From positions 19,530,001 to 19,594,000 of the forward strand of contig CM106585.1 of the NCBI GenBank assembly GCA_048013815.1: DNA of 64,000 bases, written 5' to 3'. How positions within the stretch are numbered: position 1 is the stretch's first letter; the number at the start of each line of letters is the position of its first letter. The stretch is from Setoptus koraiensis (lineage: Eukaryota > Animalia > Arthropoda). Shown piece by piece: positions 3 through 34,682 of the stretch. Position numbers and translations under genes: made by a program. The notes beneath the pieces were generated by a model. The model did not search any database. It was not told where the DNA came from and worked only from the letters and a program-made list of their open reading frames with translations.

Positions 3-1952
3 GTCCTAGCTCGATCAGTTCACATAACTTCAAGCGAGGCACTTTCTAGCAGCTGGATTGAAGAGATTCTGCAAGACATTAAGCAAGTCACTCCTCTGAG
101 TTGGTCGACCTTCTCTTTGAACCATTTCCCACCAAGCATTAAAGAATTCTTCCAGACTAATATGCCCCCAAAAGAAAACAACGCTCAATTAAAACCTGCT
201 GTAGAAGAAGAATATAGAAAATGGAAGGCTATAACTAATGAGAATAGCCTTGTTACTCATTTCTCACAACCCAATGCACCACCACTCTTCATTTGTTTAT
301 TATGGAAAATGGTGCTGAAGAAAGAACTCCTTCTAGAGAAAGAATATCTCAATCCTATTGTATACAAGATCCTAGATAGTATAAGAATCAAGGCGCTGTC
401 AGCTCACCTCAGAACTTTCGCAGATTACTTGGTGTACGAATGTGCCAACTCTCACTCTCAAGAATTCACTAAATACATGGATGCTCTAAGTGATCTCATA
501 TGGAAATTCCATATCATAACTTTGGACAGATTAACTTTGATTATGTGTTTGAGGAGTTTCGAGGGTAAAGAAGCGACTGTTTGCTCGTTCATTATTCAAA
601 ATCTGTTACTTCAGAAGAATCTTTTCAAAACCAGATTATTGTTTTTCATACACAACTACTCACCTGAACATTGGAGGCAGAATCCCGACTGGTACGAAAA
701 CCATCTGAACTTTCACAAGAGATTTCCAGAAAAATACTACTCTGACTGTTTGATAGGAATCAACCAATCGAGTTCACAATCACTACCATTGCCAACATAC
801 TTTAGTAATGTATGCTTGAGGTTGATCTATGTATTCGATCTCTTGATACATCGTTACTTGGAATTACCGGCAACACATATTGAGGCAGCCGGTGCCCTAA
901 CTCTTCTGAATGAGTTCGGCTGCATCTACAAATTTCACGAAAAGCCTATCACTTACTTATACAATACATTGAATTACTATAATGCTATATTACAAGAGAG
1001 GCCTGCTATGAAATACAGACTTGTCGCATCAATAACTGGAGCTTTCAAAGATATAAAACCATCAAACTGGTGTTTCAGCGAAAGCTTCAATCATTACTTG
1101 AAAAAACAGCCTGAGGAGGCTTGGAAACCTAACCTGAGTTATTACATAAAGCTCATTGGGAGACTAGTAGATACTCTTCAGAACAAGTCAGTTTTTCCAC
1201 ATACTGATTGGAGGTTCAACGAATTTCAGAATGTCAAGTCTCATGCTTTGTATTGTACCAGTGTAGAATTAATGGCTCTACCTGAAACGCCTCAAGTAGT
1301 TGGCGGCAATCTTCTCGATATTATTCTAGTCGGTCACGTCTGGTTGGATAGAGATGCCATTGTGCATTGGATGAATGCCATAGGATTGGTGTTGACCGCT
1401 CTACCAACAAGTTACTACAATGTCCTCAATGCTAAAATTATGGAATACCTGCAATCACCGCTTCTCACACAAGAAAGTTATCTACAGAATGTATTACAAC
1501 TCATCGATTTCTGCGATAACCATCAAAGAATGTACGAATCCCAACTAAGCTACCTTGTTGCTCTTACTCATGCAGTTTGGCATCATTCTAACACAGGACA
1601 AATCTCCAGTCTACCGGTATTTTTGAGAGAAGAAATCAAACCTGCTATCAAAACTGAGAATCAATATCTATTCATATGTTGTCTCATAGGACCGTTTTTG
1701 CCGCGTATTGAGCGTACGCGGACGATGATGGACGTTACAATCGAACTGTATGAGATTCTTGAGAAGGTTGATCAACTGTGTGACATACAACACCTCGACA
1801 CTATATGTGACTTATTGTATCATATCAAGTATATGTTCACTGGTGATGCGGTGAAGAAAGAGATTGAACGATGTATTAGAAACTTTAAGCCCAGGCTTCA
1901 ATTTCGCCTTCGTTTCATCACCCATCTGAATATTAGTGAAACTAAGACATAA
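3..1952 (+). CDS. MED23: Mediator complex subunit 23, 5'-partial (continues upstream of the window)
   Basis: Frame is open from position 3 (VLARSVHIT...SWIEEILQDIKQVTPLSWSTFSLNHFPP). Recognisable MED23 blocks: VEEEYRKWK, PPLFICLLWKM, DWRFNEF..HALYCTSVELMALP, ICDLLYHIKYMFTGD. No intron in the visible part. Confidence 0.95.
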   Translation, partial: VLARSVHITSSEALSSSWIEEILQDIKQVTPLSWSTFSLNHFPPSIKEFFQTNMPPKENNAQLKPAVEEEYRKWKAITNENSLVTHFSQPNAPPLFICLLWKMVLKKELLLEKEYLNPIVYKILDSIRIKALSAHLRTFADYLVYECANSHSQEFTKYMDALSDLIWKFHIITLDRLTLIMCLRSFEGKEATVCSFIIQNLLLQKNLFKTRLLFFIHNYSPEHWRQNPDWYENHLNFHKRFPEKYYSDCLIGINQSSSQSLPLPTYFSNVCLRLIYVFDLLIHRYLELPATHIEAAGALTLLNEFGCIYKFHEKPITYLYNTLNYYNAILQERPAMKYRLVASITGAFKDIKPSNWCFSESFNHYLKKQPEEAWKPNLSYYIKLIGRLVDTLQNKSVFPHTDWRFNEFQNVKSHALYCTSVELMALPETPQVVGGNLLDIILVGHVWLDRDAIVHWMNAIGLVLTALPTSYYNVLNAKIMEYLQSPLLTQESYLQNVLQLIDFCDNHQRMYESQLSYLVALTHAVWHHSNTGQISSLPVFLREEIKPAIKTENQYLFICCLIGPFLPRIERTRTMMDVTIELYEILEKVDQLCDIQHLDTICDLLYHIKYMFTGDAVKKEIERCIRNFKPRLQFRLRFITHLNISETKT

Positions 1953-2225
1953 TGCTGCTTGTTCTGTTTTTTGAGTCAATAAAATATCATAAATTTCTTG
2001 ACCATGATGCACACTATTATCTTACTAAAGCAAATCAATTCATTTATTTAAATTGTGATAAAATAAGGTTCTAGCTCATGTCAGGGTTACGGTTGAATCA
2101 GGTCAATAACCGTCATTATAGCGTATATTGTTTATTTAATTGAGGAAGACAGTCTTGAGCTGCCTATGTTCTATGTATTTCTGTATGTATATATATATAT
2201 AAATAATCGGTGTGATTTAGTTAAG

Positions 2226-2627
2226 TTATACCTTCTGACCTGGTATACCAGCTCCGGCGGGCTTTTTATTGATCAAGGATTTGTGGATGTGTGGGATGAC
2301 ACCACCTCCTGCTATTGTGGCTTTGATTAACGAATCAAGCTCCTCATCACCGCGGATGGCCAACTGTAAGTGGCGAGGCGTGATACGTTTGACCTTAAGA
2401 TCTTTAGAGGCATTGCCCGCTAACTCGAGGACCTCAGCGGTAAGATACTCTAGAATGGCTGCAGAGTAGACAGCGGCGGTGGCACCGACGCGCCCATGGC
2501 TGGTGGTTCTTGATTTTAGGTGACGATGGATTCGGCCAACTGGGAATTGTAAACCGGCTCTTGCCGATCGTGATATGGCTTTAGCTTTTGATTTTCCTGA
2601 ATCTTTTCCGGCTTTACCTCCTGCCAT
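2226..2627 (-). CDS. His2Av: Histone variant H2A.Z (H2Av), intronless
   Basis: [12 protein letters not shown]...[100 protein letters not shown] is diagnostic of H2A.Z. Confidence 0.98.
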
Positions 2628-2876
2628 TTTGATTTAAATTATAGATTTTTTTTTATATTTAGATATGAGGGCAATCGTTAGAATTGAATTGAGCGAATGA
2701 ATTGTCCGTTGAAATTAGCGATCGTATTTATTTGTGAGAAGCACGAACGCGTTGTCACGAGTGTGATGTTCACATAGAATCGTTGCATTAAATTTAAGGA
2801 CAGTGGGAAGAGAACGTGTGCCTTCCCCCAGACGATCGACTCATCTGATGGTGCGCAGAAGCCGAAAAATTTTCAA

Positions 2877-2893
2877 TTCGAAATTTGGCGCTC
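2877..2893. promoter_or_regulatory. E2F/CDE + CHR-like element, copy 1
   Basis: TTCGAAATTTGGCGCTC; on the minus strand GCGCC, a 4-nt spacer, then TTCGAA. Lies ~250 bp upstream of the H2A.Z ATG. Confidence 0.45.
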
Positions 2894-3440
2894 GCTTTTA
2901 TTGGGGGAAGAGCACAATTTTGTGCCCCCGTTTTAAGCTGAAGCACAGCGAATGCGGGATTTATCATTCGAAAACAAAGAGTGGGATGCGCGCTCGTTTG
3001 GAAAGGACGACAAGAGAACTCATGAGTCCTCAGGTCGTCCTTTTCAAAACGAGTGTTATCCTCACATACGTGTAACAGGCGCACTCGCACGCGCGCCACC
3101 AAGCGGTCAGTCCGGCTGATGAGCGCCACCAAGTGGTCGGTGTCGCAAGCCCACAGCACTATTCGATTGTGCTAGCGGGTCGGGCCGAAGAACTGGGCTC
3201 TCATGTGCCGTTATGCTACTAGATGCAGGCAAGATGCTATTGGTGGCATCAATCACAAATTGACGGTCTTGGTTAATTCACATTATTAAAATAAGAGCGA
3301 ACAACAATATCTTACTGTCTCTGTCGTTCTGTTCTCGGATCTCACAAAAGCTGACAATATGTAAATTTGCGACTGAGCGGCCAGTCGTCATTTGACATAG
3401 CTTTGCGTGTGCGCATGCGCACAAGCTACAAAAAGTTAGA

Positions 3441-3457
3441 TTCGAAAATTGGCGCTC
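3441..3457. promoter_or_regulatory. E2F/CDE + CHR-like element, copy 2
   Basis: TTCGAAAATTGGCGCTC, 16/17 identical to 2877-2893, in the same divergent promoter. An Inr-like TCAGT follows near 3482. Confidence 0.45.
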
Positions 3458-3833
3458 ACAGTTTCGCAGTTTCCTTCCCCTCTCAGTATGGAATAAATTT
3501 CACGTTGACGCGTTTTGGGTTGCCCCAAATAATTGTGCACCAGCGACGCGCTTTGCGCACTCGCACAATTCAAGCTGAAGTTGGCAAGATGGAGGACGAT
3601 CGAACTAGCATTATCATTCGATTATTCGCCATTGTGCCACCGTCACCAAACAGCTAGCCGAACAACCGCAACAGCAGCAGCAGCAGCCATAGGCACGTTT
3701 AAATGAGGCGACCAATGCCAAGGTGCAAACATATAAAGCGATATATTAAAAGCAACATATTGTTTATATTAAAAGAATTTAGCAATAATAATCACAGGGA
3801 TAGAAGAGAGCGCAATAGCAACAACCACAAGTC

Positions 3834-30900: not shown

Positions 30901-32929
30901 TCATCACCTATTAATCTTTGGAAGCACGTCTTTGATTCCCCATCATCGTTCTCCAATTCTACATTGACCATGATGGACATGCTCAATGCGGTTACATCAT
31001 ATCATTCATGTGAATCCCCATGCTTCAGGCGCAAATCGTGCCGTGAATGTATACAGAACAAATGCATATGGTGCGATACAAGCAATGAATGTATTGACTC
31101 GTCAGCATACTTTGCCTACTATCCAATTGGTCAATGTATGCATTATGTTGCACACGCATCGAAATGTCAAGGTACGTTATGTTCTGAGATAGAAACTTGT
31201 GATCAATGTCAGAAAAATCCAAAATGTGGTTGGATAGACGATGATACTGGTCGTGGCATTGGGAAGTGCGTCGAAGGCACCAGTTCTGGGCCTTTAAGCG
31301 GACAAAACATCACTGAACCTGTTTCTACGTCTCTGGCCACAACGGGCGAGCTTAGCAAATCACACAAATGGTATTTTTATACTTGTCCTCTTTGTCAATG
31401 TAATGGCCATAGTACGTGTAGACCAGGAACAAACATATGTCAGAAAGGTTGTAGCGGTCACACAGAAGGTAATCATTGTGAGAAATGCATAGCAGGATAT
31501 TATGGTAATCCAATCAATGGTGGCGTCTGCAGAGAGTGCAAATGCAATGGTCACGCCAGTTCCTGCAACAAAGAAACTGGAAAATGTCATTGCTCAACGA
31601 AAGGCATAATAGGGCATAGCTGCAATCAATGCGATGAACAAAATCATTATATTGGCGACCCAACTGCACCCAGTGATGGTACATGCTACTACAATCTAAC
31701 CACTGATTATCAGTATACATTTAACATGTCTAAGGCAGATGATTATTTCTATAGTGATATAAACTTCATGAACGTCCCGATGAAGAGAGATGTTGATGTC
31801 GATTTTACCATAGTTTGTTCAAGTTTGGCCCTAGTTAATATTACATCAGGTACCCCTGGCTTATCATATCGTTACAGTGAGTAAAGAGTTTCTACCGACA
31901 TGCCTATCAATCCACCAGACCACAGAAACTGATTCTTGTCATCTTTTTTTCCAACTTCTCTAGGTATCTTCTCAAGGAGATCATCTCTGCACACTGGATT
32001 GGAGTGTGGTTCATTCAGACTCAAGTTCCCCTACGACGAACATCTCATCGGCGGCGGAAGTAATTATACTTTCTATGTACATGTTTATAGATTTCAAACT
32101 CCCTTTGTGTTGCAAATAGCCTTCTCACAACACCGGACCCTTGATTTGTGGCAATTTTTCTTTACGTTTGCTAGGTGAGTTGATTTACTCAAAGAGTACC
32201 AAAGTTTGGACTGCACAGTTTCTAATTCATTCTAAATCAACTGTTAATAACTAACCTTTTTCTCTTTGGCAAAAAGCTGTTTCCTGTTTTTATTCGTTAT
32301 GGCTGGAGTTGTATGGAAACTTAAGCAAAAATATGATCTCTACAGAAGACGACAGGTTAGTAACAAAGCTGATTGCTTAGATTGTTGGAGCATGATAAGT
32401 GCGATTGGCATCGATTGATCACAATCCAGGTTATAACAATTTTTTCATTTTTATATCGCAGCAACATGTTATCGAAATGGAGCAAATGGCGAGTCGTCCC
32501 TTTGCGACCATACTGCTAGAATTGACAGGAGGATTTGGTTTTAAGAGGGCGAATTCGGTTGATCTCAAACTGAAAAAGAACGTGAACAATCTGGATCAAA
32601 CAGATAATTGTCGCGTATTGATGGACAGTAACGACGCTAAAGGAACGCTCACTCACGGCGACGAGGAACCCCCCAGGAGCTCAAGGTCTACTTCTCGGAT
32701 ATCTTTGGACAAATTCCACGAAGTAGATTATCACAAGCTGGTGGAGGCTCCATCCCCGATATCTGTGGAGCCTTGTTCCTCCGGTAAAGCGGGTATACTG
32801 AGTCTTTTTGTTCAGCTGCCCGGTCGACCGAACCTGGCTATCGGTTCTGCACTAGTCTCGCTAAGTGACGATTCAAGCAGCACAGGCTCTAATAATTTAG
32901 GAAACAATTGTGACAAGGTTGGACCTTAA
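27994..32929 (+). CDS. ATRN: Attractin/attractin-like (distracted-like) CUB-EGF-Kelch-PSI-laminin-EGF type I membrane protein, 4 exons
   Basis: Exons 27994-31849, 31964-32174, 32277-32355, 32462-32929, all GT-AG and in frame. Signal peptide, CUB (FNTECNYDYLYIFDGDS), EGF, kelch repeats, PSI, LE repeats, IAFSQH..LWQFFFTFASCFL TM region and the conserved EMEQMASRPFA tail. Confidence 0.92.
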
Positions 32930-33038
32930 GATTATCTAATCCAACTACACTTCACAAATAACACACGTCATTAATGTAAATAAACAGTCTTAAACCGTTT
33001 CCTAGAATTTTATTTAATTTAATGCTTACAAATACAAA

Positions 33039-33368
33039 TTAGCCGATAAAGTTGAACACAGCTAAGTGCAGGATAAGGTGGGCAAACAGAAAATCTGCAA
33101 ATGCCCTCTCATTTGATATATCGGGGAACATTGCTTTGTTTTCAGGATTTACTTGTAATCTAAGACACACACCAAAGGTAAAAGAGCCCACGCATGATAA
33201 GAAGCCGGCAAGGAATGAATTGAATGGAAATGTTCCAACTAGAAGGCAATATAAGAATTGAATGACGCCTGTCAACAGAATCACCAACAGATAGACGTCG
33301 ATGGCTTTGAGCCTCTTATTGTGTTTTTCTACAAAGTCCAGGCTTCGCCTCAGGGTAGCAAAAGCCAT
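33039..33368 (-). CDS. DAD1: DAD1/OST2 oligosaccharyltransferase subunit with an akirin-derived N-terminus
   Basis: LKAIDVYL...[34 protein letters not shown]...[23 protein letters not shown] is canonical DAD1. The first 19 aa ([19 protein letters not shown]) match the neighbouring akirin rather than DAD1. Confidence 0.96.
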
Positions 33369-34151
33369 TGTGTCAGTATGCCGTTTTTGGTTGTTATTAA
33401 GGGTGAGGTCGGTACCAGTGTATCAATTTACAAATAATAATAGTTGTAATAATTATTTTAATAAATAAAATGGTGAGTGACCGCTGGGCGCTACTGCGGT
33501 AATACAGTCAGGAAACACTGTGCTTACCTAGCCTATTGTACAGTCGCGGCAATGAATGATAGAACAGGGCTAGGAGTAGCGTGTTTTCCCTTGCGCAGAA
33601 CAAAGCGCGAATTTGAAACCAGCAGAACATCAGATGTTCTGCATCTGAAATGTCGATTCTGCGCATCTGGGGGGGATACGCACTACTTCTACCCCTATTC
33701 TATCATTCATTGATGCGATTGTACTGTGTGTAGTGATTGGGGGAGGAACACCTCCCCCTCCCACCTCCCCGTTTTGTAAGTGCGACATGAGAAACTCACC
33801 CATTGTGTGTGTCAGAAACTGTAGCGCCTCTGGCGGCTTTTTTTCGCACTGAGCACATTGCGACTGGGAAAAGCGCACACACACACACAGTACAATGGGC
33901 TAGGCAAGTACAGTGTTTCCTGGCTTTATTACTGCAGTAGTACTGCGATTACTCACAATTTTATTATTATCAAAATAATTATTATTACATATATAAATAT
34001 ATATATATATATATATACATACATATACCTGTAAATTGATATATTGGTACCAACCTCATCCTTAATAACAACAAAAAACGGCATACTAACACAATGGCTT
34101 GTGCTACCCTGAAGCGAAGCCTGGACTTTGTAGAAAGACCCAATAAGAGGC
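33311..34151. repeat. Decayed ~840-bp palindrome linking DAD1 and akirin
   Basis: Ungapped inverted matches: 33311-33432/34030-34151 (112/122), 33491-33540/33891-33940 (44/50), 33541-33590/33672-33721 (40/50). Perfect central stem GCAGAACAT-cag-ATGTTCTGC at 33622-33642. Confidence 0.95.
33725..33889. mobile_element. 165-bp insertion in the right palindrome arm; possible non-autonomous element
   Basis: Present in one arm only, flanked by a GTAC direct repeat (33721-33724, 33890-33893), with TGTGTGT...ACACACA inverted termini. A deletion from the other arm between two GTACs is an alternative explanation. Confidence 0.35.
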
Positions 34152-34597
34152 GCTGCCCAAGCCAATTAGCCCATCACCACAACCAACGTCTGCACCATTC
34201 ACATCATCATCATAAAATTATGTCCTCAGCTCAAGGTGCTTGTTGTTCTTCTTCTAGCTCTTCGTCACTAGTAAATTTACCTCCTAAAGAAGCATCACCA
34301 TTTGCTGATCCGATTCGAGCACGCCTAGAGGTAGCCACAAGCATAAAAGATGAGGTTAGACGATTACAACATAGGCGATCTTCACAAGCCACTCAAGAGC
34401 CCCTCGTATTCTCTGTTAGCCAAACCCAATTAATTTGTGAGCGACTGATTAAGGAAAATGAGACTAGGTTAAGAGAGGAATATGATAAAATACTAGCCTC
34501 AAAACTGGCCGAACAATATGACACCTATGTCAAATTTACATTCGACCAAATTCAAAAGCAGTACGATGGAGGATCTATACCTAGCTATTTATCGTAG
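34094..34597 (+). CDS. akirin: Akirin (subolesin), intronless
   Basis: N-terminal MACATLKRSLDF..KRRC and C-terminal LFSVSQTQLICERLIKENETRLREEYDKILASKLAEQYDTYVKFTFDQI...SYLS are the conserved akirin blocks. Confidence 0.96.
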   Translation: MACATLKRSLDFVERPNKRRCPSQLAHHHNQRLHHSHHHHKIMSSAQGACCSSSSSSSLVNLPPKEASPFADPIRARLEVATSIKDEVRRLQHRRSSQATQEPLVFSVSQTQLICERLIKENETRLREEYDKILASKLAEQYDTYVKFTFDQIQKQYDGGSIPSYLS

Positions 34598-34682
34598 ACC
34601 AATATTAACACTACTACCACTATTACTACCTATTATTATTACTATTATTATTATTATTATTACAATAGATTAATAAAGAACA

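Follow-up and report, generated by a model that had tools for sequence, protein, structure and literature searches.

A chimeric DAD1 gene in the mite Setoptus koraiensis whose promoter, leader and first codons were probably acquired by inverted copying from the neighbouring akirin gene

Chimeric new genes are known to arise by partial duplication combined with the capture of a 5' exon or promoter, for example Drosophila jingwei and Sdic, in which one gene contributes the promoter, 5' untranslated region (5'UTR) and N-terminal codons and another the body, yielding an additional gene while both parents persist. Among the closest described cases are the fold-back duplications of double-strand break repair in human (PMC3907307) and yeast (PMC7467729, PMC11724301), whose inverted arms are separated by a very short inverted-repeat spacer and whose far junction is made by microhomology; the described examples are either very short, as templated insertions of ~5-34 bp, or are large, pathological duplications accompanied by terminal deletions. 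Short-range template switches, described by the four-point model (PMC5453318, PMC7954356), replace a sequence by the reverse complement of a nearby one in one event that makes or perfects a hairpin, with no net gene rearrangement, and those reported mostly involve tens of bases in non-coding DNA or RNA stems. Staggered-break inversions in Drosophila leave inverted copies of non-repetitive gene 5' or 3' pieces together with a gene-order change between close species; the copies, which lie on either side of the inverted segment, mostly decay or give rise to extra genes, and new or altered genes can be the outcome (PMC1885836, PMC3355041). Here we analyse a head-to-head gene pair in a 64-kb stretch of the S. 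koraiensis genome (CM106585.1, forward strand; hereafter the window, to which all coordinates refer), in which the open reading frame (ORF) list places DAD1, encoding a subunit of oligosaccharyltransferase (OST), which attaches sugar chains to proteins, on the minus strand (33039-33368) and akirin, encoding an unrelated nuclear factor, on the plus strand (34094-34597).

Our analysis makes it highly probable that this DAD1 is a real, expressed chimeric gene whose front end came from a fold-back or template-switch inverted copy of that of akirin. The preliminary description had reported that 33311-33432 is the reverse complement of 34030-34151 at 112 of 122 nt, which a repeat search recovered (122 nt, 92%, 597 nt apart), and pairwise alignment agreed that the arm takes in the leader over 64 nt (33369-33432) and the coding sequence over 58 nt (33311-33368), identity ending immediately past AAGAGGC. 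These arms are just the outermost parts of a longer structure, a fold-back palindrome of 841 bp (33311-34151, with its centre at 33632), which occupies the entire DAD1-akirin intergenic region and contains nested arm pairs at 33491-33544/33887-33940 (87%) and 33538-33590/33672-33724 (81%). At 519 nt the right arm is longer than the left (321 nt), the excess consisting of a ~159-nt insertion and an AT-repeat expansion, and arm-to-arm alignment found no unmirrored sequence between the arms besides the one-arm insertion of 159 nt. Folded as single-stranded DNA, 33300-34165 reaches -268 kcal/mol (z = -32 vs shuffles), so that the palindrome is not a product of chance. From the centre to the outer end, arm identity runs 0.55, 0.82, 0.84, 0.80, 0.88 and 0.94; the lowest value (55%) belongs to the part beside the centre, 80-84% to the promoter arms, and the two highest to the leader (88%) and the coding part (94%). 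Neither the palindrome nor the 159-nt insertion has a second copy within the window. The insertion includes a mini-palindrome of a G-run and a C-run (GGGGGAGGAACACCTCCCCC) and a CA repeat, and part of it (33730-33770) lies at ~2x the flanking DNA depth.

The direction of copying is indicated by the distribution of the two N-termini. The MAC(G)ATLKR motif is conserved in akirins (115/120 homologues) and is found in 0/120 DAD1 homologues, so no outgroup DAD1 in that set natively carries an akirin-like N-terminus; the unrelated native segment T-[PS]-x-[KR]-LK, present in 114 of the 120 DAD1 homologues, is missing here. The transfer from akirin to DAD1 proposed in the preliminary description is thus borne out. 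The nearest relative in the protein collection, represented by one public run (SRR33593474; hereafter the relative), has a DAD1 (P0001) that is 83% identical and keeps a native-type segment, ...VYKEYHQTTSNRLK, followed by 16 residues identical to those of the DAD1 in the window, and the swap therefore occurred in the lineage of the window. A resemblance of LDSVYKEYH in the relative to the akirin-derived LDFVEKH was weak and judged too short to be meaningful.

Synonymous sites date the copy to after the split from the nearest sampled relative, as the comparison of DAD1 and akirin with those of a related mite was expected to reveal. Codons 1-19 of DAD1 and akirin agree at 53/57 nt, with four nonsynonymous and no synonymous differences (0 in 12.7 synonymous sites), while each arm differs from the akirin of the relative at ~6 synonymous positions, the two arms having the same base there, and between-species dS (the synonymous substitution rate) amounts to 0.31-0.87 for four local genes. 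Similarly, the 64 nt of leader beside the ATG are 90.6% identical between the DAD1 and akirin arms, whereas the akirin leader shows no alignment between species past -6 nt. When the akirin of the relative serves as outgroup, C3F and K7R fall to the DAD1 copy, which has lost the akirin-conserved Cys3, K15R falls to akirin, and codon 16 is ambiguous. The junction does bear microhomology, as had been suggested, although not the seven nucleotides AAGAGGC originally named: akirin reads AAG AGG CGC and the DAD1 of the relative AAT AGG CTC, which leaves the four common nucleotides AGGC (33311-33314), presuming a pre-event DAD1 like that of the relative.

Transcripts of the fusion were found in RNA from two samples of another study (X6 and X8). 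The X6 contig is colinear with the genome across the fusion junction to the stop, with no joints, which disposes of a DAD1 mRNA using a different 5' exon, and the X8 contig spans 33207-33486. Reads from X6 resolve two GT..AG joints in the adjacent plus-strand gene and fall to zero depth over 33564-34004 and past 35185, which identifies the run as RNA. The DAD1 transcript begins, as predicted, in the akirin-like leader, its RNA 5' end lying at ~33489, ~121 nt upstream of the akirin-derived ATG. Since that end lies inside the left arm, all 321 nt of which mirror the akirin upstream region, the proposed replacement of both promoter and leader is upheld. RNA contig depths of DAD1 and akirin are similar (13.3 and 15.5), depth being a poor measure of expression. 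At the DNA level, a 10.5-kb contig (X1) spans 31800-33734, running through DAD1, the junction, the left arm and the centre and 100 nt into the right arm, and further contigs (33736-33958 and 34035-34603) match with no mismatch. DNA depth is flat at ~118 over 31800-33710, which covers the left flank and the left arm, and ~70-94 in the right arm, save for an 89-nt contig at 33730-33770 at ~2x its flanks. Two low-complexity tracts, a G/C-rich run around 33735 and an AT repeat (33959-34034), account for the contig gaps. The presence of the diverged DAD1-side arm in independent RNA and DNA contigs speaks against an assembly artefact. A transposon or miniature inverted-repeat transposable element was rejected, the region being single-copy by depth (save 33730-33770, ~2x) and unique in the window. 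A role as hairpin or double-stranded RNA was also rejected, there being no RNA depth over 33564-34004 and the mRNA 5' ends sharing the same sense sequence, not complementary ones.

The protein encoded by the chimeric gene retains the DAD1 family core intact, the foreign part being the tail alone. Residues 12-109 match Pfam DAD (PF02109) at 144.8 bits (cut-off 27), human DAD1 of the OST structure 6S7O is matched at 7e-42, and the AlphaFold2 (AF2) model (mean predicted local confidence, pLDDT, 73.7) reproduces the three-transmembrane-helix fold of solved OST complexes, with template-modelling (TM) scores of 0.89 to human DAD1 6s7o_D and 0.88 to 6s7t_D. For the core (codons 19-109, 91 codons) the ratio of nonsynonymous to synonymous substitution rates (dN/dS) against the relative is 0.082, which points to strong purifying selection, as for a working gene. 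The native segment ...[FY]xx[ED][YH]...T[PS]x[KR]LK is replaced by the akirin-derived ...VEKHNKRLK, and the fusion is in frame at the conserved RLK directly before the first transmembrane helix; AF2 predicts a helix of low confidence for residues 2-15 of the foreign tail, ahead of that transmembrane helix. The 121-nt leader contains no upstream ATG (start context ACACAATGG) and the next in-frame Met is M81, past two transmembrane helices; because of this, the akirin-derived ATG must be the DAD1 start, and judged from the reading frame it is the sole start that would give DAD1 with its first transmembrane helix.

The donor gene has the features of its family. Akirin starts with MACATLKRSLDFVERPNKR, carrying the MAC(G)ATLKR N-terminus with a bipartite basic nuclear localization signal (NLS), and has a C-terminal coiled coil and an S-Y-x-S end (here SYLS); it has ~120 akirin homologues, and its residues 96-165 align to Akirin-2 of PDB 7NHT. 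A His/Ser-rich insert of ~37 residues (34160-34270; …AHHHNQRLHHSHHHHK…SSSSSSS…) is missing from the 130-residue akirin of the relative. One further RNA run (X12), with a different organism label, has an additional CAT (His) after 34201, the tract thus being polymorphic. The same run contains DAD1 and akirin contigs (33017-33255 and 34104-34354) with two differences each, the fusion junction not being covered, and may represent another strain or population.

We propose that the chimera formed by fold-back repair or an intra-strand template switch. Following a single break or stalled fork upstream of DAD1, the akirin-side strand would have folded onto itself at a short inverted repeat where the centre now lies, and synthesis would have made an inverted copy of the akirin promoter, leader and first 19 codons. 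Through the AGGC microhomology this newly made strand would then have been joined to the DAD1 end left by resection, and the promoter, start and ~20-24 N-terminal residues of DAD1 itself would have been overwritten. This proposal rests on the arms abutting at a perfect inverted repeat, on the outer microhomology, on the lack of anything unmirrored and on native sequence having been replaced, not added. Precedents for such events exist in inverted duplications of the fold-back type (PMC3907307, PMC7467729, PMC11724301) and in template switches that put an inverted copy of neighbouring DNA in place of a sequence (PMC5453318).

Compared with the systems outlined above, the locus shares with fold-back duplications the inverted arms, here at a 1-nt spacer, the microhomology (AGGC) at the far junction and the single-copy DNA with no transposon. 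Unlike those cases, it would represent a fixed event of ~320 bp, an in-frame replacement of promoter and coding start in a gene that still works. With template switches it has in common the replacement of sequence by a nearby reverse complement, in what may have been one event, the hairpin and no net gene rearrangement; the ~320 nt involved exceed the tens of bases mostly reported, and regulatory and coding sequence would have been swapped between unrelated genes. Like the Drosophila inversion duplications, it combines inverted, non-repetitive 5' gene sequence with a gene-order change between close species, whereas its copies abut and one of them overwrote the 5' end of a conserved gene. It also resembles bidirectional promoters (PMC3082894) in having divergent genes, ~450 bp between transcript starts and one intergenic region, but a usual promoter of this kind is no mirror duplication, and its two genes have no common leader, start codon or N-terminal codons. 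The resemblance extends to genes of the type described in the opening sentence, in that the front end of one gene is joined to the body of another; here, however, the recipient is apparently the working copy of an OST subunit, its replacement in place being putative. A literature search found no paper linking DAD1 and akirin in such a manner, and palindromic, inverted or bidirectional promoters are unmentioned in the eriophyoid genome literature that was searched. Chimeric genes and fold-back duplications are thus known separately; what is apparently new is the in-place replacement of the promoter, start and N-terminus of an OST subunit, with transcripts and a relative in the native state.

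The two species arrange the genes around the locus differently. The window has DAD1 (-), akirin (+), a DnaJ-like gene (-) and REV3 (+) in succession, whereas in the relative one contig (L001) has DAD1 (+) followed 365 bp later by REV3 (+) and another (L002) has akirin (+) and the DnaJ/Pam18-like gene (-); one species thus has DAD1 across the akirin-DnaJ pair from where the other has it. In tblastn of the window, no DAD1 remnant was detected between the DnaJ-like gene and REV3. A gene fragment upstream of akirin in the relative (L002 3-134) has no match in the window, nor do the flanks of the relative align to the intergenic DNA of the window, and outgroup synteny is uninformative as to the polarity of the change, Halotydeus DAD1 and Tetranychus akirin having unrelated neighbours. 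Ahead of DAD1, L001 opens with 152 nt whose reverse complement recurs at 93% identity at the end of L002, ahead of the DnaJ-like gene. A further match of 34 nt (91%) brings the similarity to within 17 and 8 nt of the respective start codons, and the same 30-mer terminates both contigs (matched regions L001:1-237 and L002:1278-1465). The DAD1 5' flank of the relative is therefore also a copy of the 5' flank of a neighbour, arranged either as a DnaJ-DAD1 palindrome or as a direct repeat, since the short contigs fit both. In addition, a non-canonical extension of 26 residues (MVKVSKAGTTNASTNVTKQPKTDKLP) replaces the usual start of DAD1 in the relative, and comparison of the two species indicates that the DAD1 5' end has been remodelled in both lineages.

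Several observations weigh against the fold-back origin of a working chimera. The DAD1 5' end was read from contig ends, not from cap analysis of gene expression (CAGE) or rapid amplification of cDNA ends (RACE), translation of the akirin-derived N-terminal peptide is something that we infer, and no single short-read DNA contig links DAD1 to akirin. The search for a second DAD1 or a remnant, by tblastn of the DAD1 proteins of the window and of the relative, hit 33042-33368 alone and had the window as its scope. As DAD1 lies beside REV3 in the relative, a pre-event head-to-head akirin neighbour may be doubtful. Moreover, the outward rise in arm identity is not predicted by a single event followed by neutral decay, and may call for constraint on the leader and coding parts, a palindrome centre that decays faster, or repeated events. 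This last point favours an origin in two steps, in which an older fold-back made a non-coding palindromic bidirectional promoter and a later gene conversion between the arms, or a second template switch, lengthened the palindrome outwards and overwrote the DAD1 leader and first codons. The rise from 0.55 to 0.94 and the 0 synonymous differences in the coding arm would fit such a history, which we nevertheless regard as unlikely: conversion requires homology flanking the tract on both sides, and the outer end offers a 4-nt match; 5'UTR constraint together with faster decay or revision at palindrome centres gives the same gradient; and the gradient itself is built on short segments and small numbers.

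The altered gene order bears on two further readings. If the chimera were a relocated extra copy, a conventional DAD1 elsewhere would serve OST and this copy would be redundant or have a new function. The position of DAD1, directly upstream of REV3 in the relative and across akirin here, suggests a move in one lineage, and chimeric genes in the literature come mostly from duplicates; the core dN/dS of 0.082 is, however, typical of an essential single-copy gene, the RNA depth is near that of akirin and no DAD1 remnant lies within the window, which makes an extra copy improbable. Less credible still is that the inverted duplication is a by-product of a staggered-break chromosomal inversion, as at Drosophila inversion breakpoints, even though gene order differs between the two species at exactly these genes. 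In that model the copies flank the inverted segment, whereas here the arms meet at a 1-nt centre with all but one insertion mirrored, and, when the model is worked through, the extra copy of the akirin 5' end falls away from the 5' end of DAD1 and no fusion results; it was rejected on topology. Fold-back chimeras are a familiar artefact of whole-genome amplification of tiny animals, and this would suit an assembly or amplification chimera, or a real DAD1 mRNA with another 5' exon or start. We hold such an error to be the least probable of all the alternatives, given that the arms differ at 10 of 122 positions, that the DAD1-side arm occurs at 0 mismatches in RNA contigs from the two samples of another study and in the 10.5-kb DNA contig, and that the ORF is continuous, with no splice joints and no other Met ahead of the first transmembrane helix.

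The features of the locus are collected in Table 1. The best named homologues of DAD1 and akirin are from acariform mites, and the local genes are compact and intron-poor. A spliced plus-strand gene at 32053-33004 has introns at 32173-32274 and 32353-32458 (GT..AG) and a stop at 32929; its RNA contig extends to 33004 and that of DAD1 starts from 32998, so that the convergent transcripts abut or overlap by ~7 nt. Between the DnaJ-like gene and REV3, 35196-35300 has a DNA word depth of ~780-3600 vs ~118 in its flanks and is a genomic high-copy repeat with a single occurrence in the window.

Table 1. Features of the DAD1-akirin locus and its neighbours, in window coordinates.
Feature	Coordinates	Strand	Evidence
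Chimeric DAD1 coding sequence, 109 residues, intronless	33039..33368	-	ORF; Pfam DAD; AF2 match; core dN/dS
Akirin-derived ATG and codons 1-19 of DAD1	33312..33368	-	53/57 nt identical to akirin codons 1-19
Fusion junction, AGGC microhomology (codon 19 AGG and base 1 of codon 20)	33311..33314	-	DAD1 and akirin of both species compared
DAD1 5'UTR, 121 nt, without upstream ATG	33369..33489	-	RNA contig ends at 33489 (X6) and 33486 (X8)
DAD1 mRNA, assembled from RNA-seq, colinear with genome	32998..33489	-	X6 contig, 492 nt, 0 mismatches, no joint
Palindrome left arm (the probable copy)	33311..33631	.	Arm-to-arm alignment; DNA fold
Palindrome centre, 10-bp perfect stems around one base at 33632	33622..33642	.	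Sequence; DNA fold
Palindrome right arm (upstream region, leader and first 19 codons of akirin itself)	33633..34151	.	Arm-to-arm alignment
~159-nt insertion, right arm only (G/C-rich runs, CA repeat)	33727..33886	.	Alignment gap block
AT-microsatellite expansion, lengthening the right arm	33995-34025	.	Arm-to-arm alignment
Akirin coding sequence, 167 residues, donor gene	34094..34597	+	ORF; homologues; alignment to Akirin-2 of PDB 7NHT; RNA contig 34073-34596
DnaJ/Pam18-like gene, syntenic with akirin in the relative	34683..35003	-	Weak Pfam DnaJ/Pam16 matches; L002 synteny
REV3 (DNA polymerase zeta)	35402..39847	+	ORF; blastn 85% over 4.4 kb; L001 gene table

As to function, the likeliest reading is a near-neutral swap of a tolerant cytosolic tail. 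The new tail of 19 residues would be tolerated; it is of similar length, is predicted to be helical and recreates the basic K/R-LK beside the membrane. An N-terminal bipartite NLS has been described for human AKIRIN2 (10.1101/2024.11.08.622636), and the 19 transferred residues contain, of the akirin bipartite NLS, the first basic pair in full and the second cluster in part. Together with the LK of DAD1 itself, the tail reads RR-x9-KRLK, which we speculate might be a recreated akirin-type bipartite basic motif on the cytosolic face of an endoplasmic reticulum membrane protein. On the regulatory side, DAD1 would be driven by a mirror copy of the akirin promoter, with a ~120-nt leader and the AUG context in common with akirin, and the two genes are therefore expected to be, and probably are, co-expressed.

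The finding concerns one of the most conserved small eukaryotic membrane proteins, whose front end appears to have been swapped in one lineage for that of an unrelated nuclear factor. The gene apparently still works. The locus would serve as a natural experiment showing how little OST function depends on the cytosolic tail of DAD1, and as a clean, dated case of in-place promoter and start-codon capture through inverted duplication. The DAD1 flank of the relative, with its 93% match to the flank of the DnaJ-like gene, and the non-canonical DAD1 start found there lead us to suggest, tentatively, a lineage-wide process in miniaturised mite genomes, in which fold-back events would repeatedly produce palindromic shared promoters at head-to-head gene pairs and, given such short intergenic regions, would sometimes extend into coding sequence and overwrite the starts and N-termini of essential genes. 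If such a process is common in these genomes, it would constitute an undescribed route by which extreme compaction rewires both gene regulation and protein termini.

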